Shown here: piece by piece, positions 51,374-53,456 of the stretch
Position numbering within the stretch: position 1 is the first letter of the stretch
Layout of the letters: every line of letters starts with the position of its first letter
Sequence record: OU509535.1
Length of the DNA stretch: 64,000 nucleotides
Reading direction: 5' to 3' (one strand)
Notes under the pieces: model-generated
Seen by the model: only the letters and a program-made list of their open reading frames with translations
The model's database searches: none
What the model was told of the DNA's origin: nothing
Made by a program: the position numbers and the translations under genes

Positions 51374-51402
51374 TTGAACAAAAAGTTCAATAATGATATA
51401 AT
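51374..51402 (+). promoter_or_regulatory. promoter with TTGAAC-N5-GTTCAA inverted repeat
   Basis: TTGAAC-17-TATAAT. Confidence 0.8.
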
Positions 51403-51578: not shown

Positions 51579-51607
51579 TTGAACAAAAAGTTCAATGCTG
51601 ATATAAT
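51579..51607 (+). promoter_or_regulatory. promoter with TTGAAC-N5-GTTCAA inverted repeat
   Basis: TTGAAC-17-TATAAT. Confidence 0.8.
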
Positions 51608-51615
51608 AAAAGAAT

Positions 51616-51706
<91 letters not shown>

Positions 51707-51785: not shown

Positions 51786-51814
51786 TTGACAAAAATGTTC
51801 AGTACTTATATAAT
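51786..51814 (+). promoter_or_regulatory. sigma70 promoter for the intron-containing tRNA
   Basis: TTGACA-17-TATAAT with AGTACT at 51781 and 51801. Confidence 0.8.
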
Positions 51815-51829
51815 GTAGAAAAGAACATC

Positions 51830-52130
51830 GGGACTGTAGCTCAGGGGTGAGAGCAACCGACTCATGGTTATCGTGACTTTCACAAGCAATTGTGATTGAA
51901 AAACTGGATGAATTCAGGGAAACCTTAACACGTAATGGTGATGGCAATCCTGAGCCAAGCCCAATAAGCGTATTGGGAAGGTGCAGAGACTAGGTGGTTC
52001 AGCACGATCTTGCTGTGTAATACACCAATAGCGTCCGGCATCCTTATGGGATGATGATATAGTCCGTGCCTTTACGAAAGTATTGGATAAACGAATCGGC
52101 AGGTCGTTGGTTCAAAACCAACCAGTCCCA
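51830..52130 (+). tRNA. tRNA-CAU (probably Ile2, possibly elongator Met) split by a group I intron; exons 51830-51865 and 52094-52130
   Basis: joined exons give a cloverleaf with loop CT-CAT-AA; lacks initiator features. Confidence 0.88.
51866..52093 (+). mobile_element. group I intron (IC3, tRNA-intron type), 228 nt, no internal ORF
   Basis: P AATTCAGGGAAAC, Q AATCCTGAGCC, R GGTGCAGAGACT, S GATATAGTCC; U-G at the 5' splice site (tcat/gtga), P10 ggtt/aatc, terminal G. Confidence 0.92.
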
Positions 52131-52148
52131 CTTATTAAAGAAAATACA

Positions 52149-52574
52149 ATGGAATGGCGTAAATTATATCTAAAGGAATTAGATATCTATATAAATGTAT
52201 CAGATGAAGGTAATCTTCAAACATTCGATAGATATGTAACACAAACATCAATAAAAGGCAATGAATATACTAGACTAGTTGAAGGAAAAGAACTTTGTCC
52301 ATACATTAATGGTAAAGCTGGATATAGTCAAATTGGTATTCATTCTGGTGGTATACAGAAAAAATACTATGTTCATCGTCTTGTGTGGATAGCTTTCAAT
52401 GGTGAAATACCAGAAGGTTATGAAATTGATCATGATGATAATGATAAAAGTAATAATGCATTGAGCAATTTAAATCTTAAAACAAGAAAAGAAAATATGG
52501 ATAAAATGCTCATACATAGACCGTATATAAAAGAAAATTTCATTAAGAACTTTGCTCAAAAGAAAAACAAATAA
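52149..52574 (+). CDS. freestanding HNH homing endonuclease (NUMOD4-like + HNH)
   Basis: VSDEGN, VHRLVWIAFNGEIPEGYEIDHDDNDKSNNALSNL. Confidence 0.92.
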   Translation: MEWRKLYLKELDIYINVSDEGNLQTFDRYVTQTSIKGNEYTRLVEGKELCPYINGKAGYSQIGIHSGGIQKKYYVHRLVWIAFNGEIPEGYEIDHDDNDKSNNALSNLNLKTRKENMDKMLIHRPYIKENFIKNFAQKKNK

Positions 52575-52575
52575 T

Positions 52576-52648
52576 GACTCTGTAGCACAATCGGTGGTGC
52601 GATTGACTGTTAATCAATTGGTTGGGGATTCGAGTTCCTCCAGAGTCG
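52576..52648 (+). tRNA. tRNA-Asn(GUU)
   Basis: cloverleaf, attga-CT-GTT-AA-tcaat; no encoded CCA. Confidence 0.9.
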
Positions 52649-52667
52649 CTTAACAAACCAAAGAATT

Positions 52668-52814
52668 GTACCTAAATAACGAGTATATGGATTCTCTATG
52701 ATTGTCCCTGTATGAGTTAGAGAGATTATTCATAAGAAGTCGAGTGTATAGATTCTCAAAGAAATGATTGTTTATACATGAGTTATCTTAAAACGAATAT
52801 CTCAAGGTACACCA
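52668..52814 (+). ncRNA. candidate ~147-nt ACCA-ended stable RNA
   Basis: gtacct/aggtac closing stem followed by ACCA; no ORF. Confidence 0.4.
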
Positions 52815-52821
52815 AACAATT

Positions 52822-52870
52822 GACTCTGTAGTTCAGTTGGTAGATCTTATATAGTTACCAACCAGAGTCG
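52822..52870 (+). pseudogene. internally deleted tRNA-Asn-like element (mini-tRNA)
   Basis: acceptor gactctg/cagagtc+G identical to tRNA-Asn; no anticodon arm; gttggta/taccaac hairpin. Confidence 0.7.
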
Positions 52871-52878
52871 CTTACAAT

Positions 52879-52943
52879 GGAAGGTGGTAATACATCAGTA
52901 TTACCTTTTAAGACCGAAGATATGAGTATCTTCCCTTCCACCA
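52879..52943 (+). ncRNA. 65-nt three-way-junction RNA ending in ACCA
   Basis: ggaagg/ccttcc+ACCA, ggtaatac/gtattacc, gaagata/tatcttc. Confidence 0.6.
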
Positions 52944-53034
52944 CACATTGTACTCTTCTCCCGTAAGGAGAATGACAAAAAAACTATCCGAAAGATAGAA
53001 AGCCTGAAATAACAGGGTGCAATTAAATTACAAT

Positions 53035-53099
53035 GGGACATGTAGACGATAACACCAATATACTTCCAAAGGGTTGTGAGGTGCGTAATATTCCCACCA
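53035..53099 (+). pseudogene. degenerate tRNA-like element ending in ACCA
   Basis: ggga/tccc+ACCA; internal arms poorly paired. Confidence 0.35.
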
Positions 53100-53101
53100 A
53101 T

Positions 53102-53231
53102 TTTGGACAAATCGTACTGAATTAGTACTGTAATAATAGACACTTATTGCTGTAAACTGGAATGCGGTATACATTCCTTCAGATACAGAGTGTGACAATA
53201 CGATGTTAAAGGTATCCTTTGACTGTCCAAA
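53102..53231 (+). ncRNA. candidate 130-nt multibranch RNA
   Basis: tttggaca/tgtccaaa closing; nested acact/agtgt, ctgta/tacag, ggaatg/cattcc. Confidence 0.5.
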
Positions 53232-53255
53232 TTAATTTAAATGGAGTACTGAATA

Positions 53256-53456
53256 ATGTCCAAATATGTTAATCGTCAAAAACGAAAAGCACGTACTAAG
53301 GACGAAATTCTACAGTTGATACAAAAAAATCAAAAAGATGTAGTTATTGAAGAATATATTTTTCAGTACGGTAATCAACAATCAATGGTACAAGAAAGTA
53401 ATGGTAAGTATCATTCTGAGCATTACGATCTCATTAAACGAATTCTTTTGAAATAA
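53256..53456 (+). CDS. hypothetical protein
   Basis: GGAG RBS. Confidence 0.65.
   Translation: MSKYVNRQKRKARTKDEILQLIQKNQKDVVIEEYIFQYGNQQSMVQESNGKYHSEHYDLIKRILLK

Follow-up and report, generated by a model that had tools for sequence, protein, structure and literature searches.

A group I intron within a jumbo-phage tRNA(CAU) gene and a neighbouring free-standing HNH nuclease gene: candidate partners in trans-homing

The window analysed here, a stretch of 64,000 nucleotides (nt), is 100% identical to sequence record OU509535.1, a Klebsiella jumbo phage record without annotation whose close kin are RaK2 and K64-1 (Alcyoneusvirus). Within its tRNA cluster (Leu, Gly, Arg, Ser, Ser, Asn), a tRNA(CAU) gene is split by a group I intron devoid of open reading frames (ORFs), and a free-standing HNH homing endonuclease gene follows at once. 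All features of this locus lie on the + strand. The 36-nt 5' exon (51830-51865) ends with the anticodon CAT, the 228-nt intron (51866-52093) closes with its final base G (omega-G) at 52093, and the 37-nt 3' exon (52094-52130) has no encoded CCA end. ARAGORN, run with introns allowed, calls a single tRNA(CAU) at 51830-52130 with the intron immediately 3' of the anticodon, and it folds the joined exons into a cloverleaf with anticodon CAU; the exon borders rest on this call, the joined-exon fold and inspection. After a spacer of 18 nt (52131-52148, by inspection) comes the HNH gene (52149-52574), which starts with ATG, encodes 141 amino acids (aa), stops at 52572-52574 and was identified as HNH_3 by Pfam, PHROG and structure matches. 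A single nt further on lies tRNA-Asn(GUU) (52576-52649), the conserved right neighbour, placed by its tRNA call and by RaK2/K64-1 homology reaching back to 52570. The sequence-only reading of this DNA had already put an ORF-less intron beside a free-standing HNH gene, and the ORF, Pfam HNH_3 and Rfam RF00028 all agree with it. That the HNH gene is wedged before tRNA-Asn proved correct, and so did its start right after the 3' exon, except that the spacer had been counted as 19 nt.

A sigma-70 consensus promoter at 51786-51814 (TTGACA, 17 nt, TATAAT; 12/12) serves the split tRNA(CAU), the HNH gene and tRNA-Asn. No promoter-like or terminator-like site was found on the + strand between this promoter and tRNA-Asn. 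Since none separates the tRNA from the HNH ORF, the latter, itself promoterless, most likely relies on the promoter of the tRNA. Near-identical promoter-like repeats (51374-51402, 51579-51607 and 51786-51814) precede Ser(GCU), Ser(UGA) and the split tRNA(CAU), the three tRNA genes after tRNA-Arg. The promoter before the split tRNA(CAU) is a perfect consensus; RaK2 and RCIP0023 have a weaker -10 element at that place. The whole arrangement recurs in two metagenome contigs (L010 and L154) and in a 1.5%-diverged contig of sequencing run X6, so that the layout in the window is no assembly accident.

The 141-aa ORF matches Pfam HNH_3 (E 4.2e-19; 68.3 bits, where 24.8 is the cut-off) and has further matches to several families of HNH endonucleases in PHROG. 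A TTG-started ORF of 163 aa (52083-52574) was rejected as gene model: it overlaps the intron and the 3' exon, and alignment puts the N-termini of homologues at the ATG of 52149. Among solved structures, I-HmuI of Bacillus phage SPO1 alone matches the sequence significantly (E 1.1e-10, residues 18-101 of 174), and H95 and N116, which align with the I-HmuI HNH motif, are invariant in alignments of 16 and of 19 sequences. Foldseek, queried with an AlphaFold model of the protein (pLDDT 88.6), returned the I-HmuI structure 1U3E as the only PDB match with E<=0.001 (E 3.5e-6, probability 1.00, 33% identity). The two proteins thus share the catalytic His and Asn, sequence and fold. They differ in that I-HmuI is an intron-encoded nicking endonuclease of 174 aa with a C-terminal helix-turn-helix, whereas the free-standing protein of the window ends soon after the HNH core with two helices and lacks the helix-turn-helix. 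We predict from sequence and model that it is an I-HmuI-type HNH nickase, built from an N-terminal NUMOD4-like sheet and an HNH_3 core without the C-terminal helix-turn-helix. Its gene differs from the window copy by four synonymous and two non-synonymous codons in L010 and by one synonymous codon in L154.

The intron scores 89.9 bits with the Rfam group I model RF00028 (E 1.1e-21, gathering score 50) and covers the full model, positions 1-253. On inspection, TCAT at 51862-51865 can pair with GTGA at 51873-51876 as P1, which places a U.G wobble (T51865/G51873) at the splice site. Across seven tRNA-hosted introns, 21 of 38 consensus pairs are preserved via changes on both sides. An endonuclease gene would not fit into the 228 nt of the window intron. 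We infer that it is self-splicing and would yield a working tRNA(CAU), a prediction from sequence. Its core is 98% identical to the intron at the same position in the Klebsiella phages Muenster, KP13-7, RCIP0023 and phiKp_21, and 92-93% identical to that of the E. coli phages TH47 and Turkey5. Identity is 83% to the terL (terminase) introns of Vibrio phages and 74.5% to a cyanophage psbA intron. In a comparison made among phage introns, the nearest sequence relatives are thus introns of phage protein genes (terL, psbA and Staphylococcus phage genes), with which we group the window intron because of this similarity. The split tRNA is not annotated in any of at least seven sequenced Klebsiella and E. 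coli jumbo phages that carry the intron, and tRNA counts for these public genomes are therefore too low.

In Azoarcus, the intron of tRNA-Ile(CAU) is inserted directly after the anticodon. The bacterial tRNA group I introns (Azoarcus tRNA-Ile(CAU), cyanobacterial tRNA-fMet, tRNA-Leu; cited in PMC3984707) resemble that of the window in splitting a CAU tRNA within its anticodon loop. The window intron differs from them in being part of a phage genome and, within the comparison described above, in having its closest kin in phage protein genes. Hausner, Hafez and Edgell stated in 2014 that every phage intron then known lay in a protein-coding gene, despite the many phage tRNA genes (PMC3984707). 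We found no later account of a group I intron in a phage tRNA gene in the open-access literature, which does not prove priority. The earlier remark that a tRNA target would be unusual was overstated; what is unusual is the group I intron within a phage tRNA gene.

The combination of split tRNA(CAU), intron and HNH gene is not confined to the window. A second instance (L155) is part of an unrelated metagenomic phage contig of 349 kb, with flanks that match no phage record. Here exon 1 of an Ile2-like tRNA(CAU) ends at 892, a group I intron of 76.6 bits spans 893-1129, exon 2 reaches to 1166, and an HNH gene for 134 aa, 52% identical to the window HNH, occupies 1195-1599. Positions 863-1554 align to the window phage as a single block with 70% identity. 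Judged from these alignments, the three-part module is present in two very different genomes and appears to move or persist as a block. Further split tRNAs came from a motif scan of IMG/VR followed by ARAGORN and Rfam: a tRNA-Asn(GUU) with an intron of 218 nt and 90.1 bits (L149), a tRNA-Leu(UAA) with one of 256 nt and 80.8 bits (L094/L109), and another tRNA of unsettled anticodon with an intron of 79.8 bits (L142). Classical HNH genes start right after the split tRNAs of L109 and L142. Three of the five tRNA-hosted intron loci found in IMG/VR (four distinct ones, L094 being equal to L109 here) have an HNH gene directly downstream. A fourth may have it inside the intron: in L146, an ORF of 180 aa at 943-1485, 34% identical to the HNH type found in RaK2, lies within a putative 656-nt insert of a tRNA-Leu. 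This insert is below the Rfam threshold and unconfirmed as an intron. An exact-pattern scan of IMG/VR for the exon-intron junction gave eight loci, none with an intron, which we dismissed as chance matches. Scanning for the window 3' exon gave no match, nor did a scan of viral and genome collections for the P9 type common to the window and L155. The intron was also absent beside the HNH homologues in L011-L013 and L034-L037.

Homologues of the window nuclease with 44-62% identity occur in unrelated phages, where they almost always touch a tRNA gene, mostly tRNA(CAU). In 10 of about 13 unrelated phage lineages, the HNH gene is at most ~30 nt away from a tRNA(CAU) gene. It starts 11-28 nt 3' of tRNA(CAU) in the window, in the T5-like Kenya-K20 (also L157) and in L011, L012, L013/L014, L021/L022 and L155. 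In Cba120-like Kuttervirus phages (37-38% identical), L158 and L167, it overlaps a downstream tRNA(CAU) or lies within 10 nt of it. In KP13-26, L015, L156 and L023 it sits between a non-canonical tRNA-like gene upstream and tRNA-Leu downstream, and a lambdoid-prophage subclade is the only one with no tRNA nearby. Among 80 metagenomic HNH_3 relatives, seven have any tRNA within 1.2 kb, and six of these seven rank among the 14 best-scoring ones, all (nearly) full-length. As the tRNA-adjacent cases are concentrated in the top matches, the association belongs to this clade and not to HNH_3 proteins in general. It fits a tRNA(CAU) target, as far as gene neighbourhoods can suggest one. The adjoining tRNA(CAU) genes are only 45-72% identical to that of the window, and the chief part they share is the loop CTCATAA.

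Within the clade, the window HNH is nearest to P0002, and the L155 HNH pairs with P0003 (support 93/90); both of these relatives follow an intronless tRNA(CAU). The tree rejects the two intron-linked HNHs as sisters. Because they are not sisters and have their nearest kin beside intronless tRNAs, gain or loss of the intron beside an HNH already in place must have happened repeatedly. The same neighbourhoods speak, indirectly, against a need for the intron in the immunity of this family. About 11 lineages of the clade stand beside intronless tRNAs. The tRNA in L012 is 86% identical to the joined exons of L155, and the tRNA-Met genes of Kenya-K20, which has the HNH, and Kenya-K44, which does not, are 1 nt apart. 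An arrival of the window tRNA exons together with the HNH from a T5-like or Kuttervirus cassette was considered and rejected: those tRNAs are 53-72% identical, no closer than others.

Two further observations concern the surroundings of HNH homologues. In KP13-26 (L007, ~1840-1942), and likewise in L015 and L023, the non-canonical tRNA-like gene just upstream of the homologue is about 100 nt long, with a CCA end and with acceptor and T arms that are well formed; ARAGORN reports it only at relaxed settings and with inconsistent anticodons. In Kenya-K20, a 3' fragment of a tRNA-Leu comes after the homologue (L008, 2409-2446); other T5-like phages (HMD-P5) have this tRNA-Leu complete. In Kenya-K44, the tRNA-Met is the same, but the HNH and the tRNA-Leu fragment are both missing.

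At the slot between tRNA(CAU) and tRNA-Asn, cultured relatives present all four combinations of intron and nuclease. PBECO4 and BF17 have neither, with an intronless tRNA(CAU), 4 nt and tRNA-Asn. The intron alone is found in RCIP0023 and phiKp_21, by sequence, and in Muenster and KP13-7, by the same BLAST breakpoints. RaK2 and K64-1 have only a nuclease, namely an intronless tRNA (81% identical to E. coli tRNA-Ile in RaK2) followed by a different HNH of 235 aa. Both occur in Turkey5 and TH47, which combine the intron with the RaK2-type HNH, and in the window, which combines it with the 141-aa HNH. Six sequenced phages thus have the intron without the 141-aa HNH, and four of the six have no HNH in the slot at all. 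In Asteriusvirus, the intron goes together with the other HNH, of 234 aa: Turkey5 and TH47 have the two, PBECO4 and BF17 have neither. The 141-aa HNH gene is optional: it is missing in RaK2, K64-1, the RCIP0023 group, PBECO4 and BF17, with sharp breakpoints between conserved genes. The sequence-only reading had suggested a survey of this kind, with independent occurrence of intron and HNH counting against it. Independence is largely what we see, both in the four combinations and in the HNH lineages beside intronless tRNAs, next to two divergent modules, window and L155, that hold both.

The second HNH, unrelated to the first and of ~235 aa, shows weak HNH_3 and helix-turn-helix matches and fills the slot in RaK2 (L002, 2207-2914), K64-1, Turkey5 (L005, 3073-3777) and TH47. 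In the intron-only phages, a different tRNA-Asn is followed by a 181-aa HNH with a NUMOD3 motif (L004, 4029-4717 in RCIP0023; L003, 2509-3202 in phiKp_21). Set in a conserved non-coding stretch, this is a third endonuclease family within 1 kb of the locus. The intronless tRNA(CAU) genes of PBECO4 (L024, ~2598-2675) and BF17 (L025, 2750-2828) are nearly identical except that the whole anticodon stem is swapped, AACGA/TCGTT versus CCCCC/GGGGT. Such a compensatory swap is the change expected if that DNA or RNA is under attack.

Only OU509535.1 covers the whole cassette when it is used as a query. Homology to RaK2 and K64-1 extends to 51865 and resumes at 52570, 5 nt before the end of the ORF, with 97-99% identity, and the right cassette junction is exactly the border between HNH and tRNA-Asn. 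Homology to RCIP0023 runs through the intron to 52098 and resumes at 52938. By these alignments, the window phage is a RaK2-like backbone in which one tRNA-plus-HNH cassette appears to have been swapped for another. The displaced cassette would have consisted of an intronless tRNA-Ile2-type gene and the unrelated 235-aa HNH, the incoming one of a different tRNA(CAU) allele, the group I intron and the 141-aa HNH. The intron core is of RCIP0023 type, yet both exons, the first dozen and the last 28 intron bases differ from RCIP0023, and the intron 3' end resembles L155 and Vibrio phage introns. Given a core of local type and an L155-like 3' end, the simplest reading is that two diverged alleles, each with an intron, recombined within the intron core.

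Recombination junctions in the relatives coincide with tRNA 3' ends. A junction of CCACCA to CACATTG occurs in RCIP0023 and also after a degenerate tRNA-Ser-like remnant at 52879-52943, the 3' end of which is CCTTCCACCA, as in tRNA-Ser(UGA) at 51697-51706. In run X15, contigs are joined at 51706 (the tRNA-Ser end; one abundant contig) and at 52065, each to ~52939. The remnant is the right end of a variable block of ~1.2 kb, which is bracketed by tRNA remnants. At 52822-52871, a truncated tRNA-Asn copy passes from the 5' acceptor and D arm straight to the 3' acceptor strand; like the tRNA-Ser remnant it was recognised by inspection and alignment, and it is not called as a tRNA. The non-coding stretch that follows (52944-53255, ~310 nt) contains several hairpins, is kept at ~98% in RaK2/K64-1 and partly in the RCIP0023 group, and has high depth in run X15. 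In RCIP0023 it is broken by the different tRNA-Asn and the 181-aa HNH. A low-threshold Rfam search of 52640-53270 gave no match, even at E<=1; the stretch may be an undescribed structured RNA or leader.

We read the locus as that of a free-standing homing nickase aimed at tRNA(CAU) loci, with the intron carried along by co-conversion, i.e., as trans-homing, and consider the chances of this being right to be about even. The parts are identified and intact, the HNH gene is optional, the breakpoints are mosaic and the clade is associated with tRNA(CAU). The remainder of the mechanism is inferred by analogy to T4 MobE, T4 SegB and F-CphI. The whole block would be transcribed as one precursor, from which the intron would splice itself out to leave a working tRNA(CAU), and tRNA processing would release a poorly translated HNH message. 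In a mixed infection, the nuclease would then nick the tRNA(CAU) locus of relatives that lack the HNH. Recombinational repair would copy the HNH gene together with the adjoining exon and the intron, which is only 55 nt away. An ORF-less intron could thereby be mobilised in trans, like the T4 nrdB intron by MobE, and its core may also provide homologous sequence for recombination between divergent alleles. Self-protection of the carrier would be independent of the intron, because most relatives, including Kenya-K20 when compared with the HNH-less Kenya-K44, manage without one.

T4 encodes MobE, a free-standing HNH without a promoter; it nicks nrdB and mobilises, in trans, the nrdB intron next to it (PMC2790892). 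The window resembles the system of MobE, the nrdB intron and I-TevIII in that a free-standing, promoterless gene for a nickase of HNH type, predicted in our case, stands beside an intron unable to move alone, which makes co-conversion the expected route. It differs in that the T4 intron contains a defunct endonuclease gene and the window intron no ORF, and in that the target gene here would be a tRNA gene. The 27-bp site that SegB of T4 recognises includes the T-psi-C motif of tRNAs, and the enzyme spreads both itself and the tRNA genes around it (PMC2330249). Like SegB, a GIY-YIG enzyme, and the T5 enzymes F-TflI, -II and -IV, the window HNH belongs to the free-standing homing endonuclease genes in phage tRNA clusters that are, in the window by prediction, co-transcribed with tRNAs (PMC2330249). 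Unlike it, SegB is of another nuclease family and involves no intron. A comparison with T5 gave no match to the window HNH at E<=1e-5, and hence the protein is, as far as tested, not an orthologue of a characterised T5 enzyme.

Several points weigh against trans-homing as we propose it. The spliced exon junction was looked for in contigs of four sequencing runs, including the RNA-labelled X15 (probably DNA) and X17, and was not seen; the sole trace of RNA comes from one metatranscriptome, where a contig of 182 nt is identical to the intron core. In run X6, a listed G-to-T change at 52176 would make HNH codon 10 a stop, on a single contig with 11 further differences unlisted, and the HNH gene may hence be decaying in places. 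The predicted protein lacks the C-terminal DNA-binding domain of I-HmuI, so that its specificity and even its activity are presumptive, as is the cleavage site of any member of the tRNA(CAU)-tied clade. The correlation between tRNA and HNH divergence is weak and non-significant (rho 0.38, p 0.09) and does not establish co-inheritance as a cassette. Finally, the CAU tRNAs of the clade share little beyond the anticodon loop; the anticodon region could thus be the target, which would favour an intron that protects its carrier.

This last point leads to strict collaborative homing, in which the HNH recognises the anticodon stem-loop of an intronless tRNA(CAU), the intron inserted after CAT splits that site and protects the carrier, and both invade together. 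We regard it as possible, if on the unlikely side. According to PMC6083498 and PMC3984707, which describe the work of Zeng, Bonocora and Shub (2009), the free-standing F-CphI cuts intronless psbA, and the carrier is shielded by the psbA group I intron of cyanophage S-PM2. The anatomy in the window is exactly that of psbA and F-CphI (PMC6083498), a conserved gene interrupted by an intron without ORF and, next to it, a free-standing endonuclease gene, and the intron is itself akin to a psbA intron. The host gene differs, a protein gene with an Endo VII-like nuclease there and a tRNA gene with an HNH_3 nickase type here; that the nuclease cuts where the intron is inserted, and that the intron shields its carrier, are candidate properties in our case. 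Strict collaborative homing would account for a clade tied to divergent CAU tRNAs whose chief common part, CTCATAA, is where the intron sits. It would also account for the recurrence of the three-part module in L155, the joint presence or absence of intron and 234-aa HNH in Asteriusvirus and the anticodon-stem swap between BF17 and PBECO4. An endonuclease for the tRNA-fMet anticodon region is, moreover, on record (cited in PMC3984707). However, most members of the HNH clade, including both nearest kin, stand beside an uninterrupted tRNA(CAU) that keeps CTCATAA, RaK2 and K64-1 keep an HNH beside an intronless tRNA, and in the RCIP0023 group the intron persists although the slot contains no HNH. 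I-HmuI-type nickases have been reported to cut intron-containing alleles too, which likewise counts against an intron that confers immunity. For the earlier proposal of collaborative homing on a tRNA gene, anatomy and recurrence, in L155 and with other HNHs after the split tRNAs of L109 and L142, are thus in agreement, but the linkage is largely not, as intron and HNH mostly assort independently. In its full form, a phage-type group I intron would have colonised a phage tRNA(CAU) and formed a mobile three-part module with a minimal HNH nickase at the tRNA 3' end, in true collaborative homing that includes the tRNA(CAU) of competing phages and has the intron as immunity determinant. This we hold to be rather unlikely. 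If it were true, the HNHs beside the split tRNAs of L109 and L142 and the possible intron-embedded HNH of L146 would represent consecutive steps by which mobile introns arise. Nicking of host tRNA genes by the nuclease, raised earlier as well, is pure speculation.

The independent assortment would also suit coincidence in a recombination hot spot, where selfish elements that favour tRNA clusters settle separately and an HNH with another target, inactive or decaying, is of no use to the intron. All four combinations exist, two unrelated HNH genes have occupied the slot, tRNA fragments and CCACCA junctions point to repeated rearrangement, and the possible nonsense codon in run X6 would be no surprise. 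Yet the same three-part block is found in two divergent instances, an HNH gene directly follows in most of the tRNA-hosted intron loci of IMG/VR, and in L010 and L154 the HNH gene is undamaged, its differences from the window copy being mostly synonymous; we therefore think coincidence unlikely. Very improbable, in our view, is a domesticated nuclease that acts like SegB in phage T6 in the segmental amplification or exchange of tRNA genes against tRNA-targeting host defences. There, SegB, a homing endonuclease in a tRNA cluster, amplifies tRNA-Tyr and allows escape from Septu (PMC13096335), and duplicated tRNA remnants are present at our locus too. Against this role stand the absence of the HNH gene from nearly all sequenced relatives and the lack of amplification in the window, and a tie of this HNH family to defence would be conjectural.

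A free-standing nuclease next to an ORF-less intron is a known arrangement; what is new is the phage tRNA gene as host and the very small I-HmuI-like nuclease of a tRNA(CAU)-associated clade. Related introns also reside in tRNA-Asn, tRNA-Leu and one tRNA of unsettled anticodon in uncultivated phages. From the analysis emerges a clade of HNH nucleases, very small and associated with tRNA(CAU) genes, the target of which should be easily mappable. With all four combinations, the cultured relatives provide a natural set of donors and recipients for collaborative homing versus trans-homing. The same set would let one test the proposed merging of free-standing nucleases and ORF-less introns into mobile introns.

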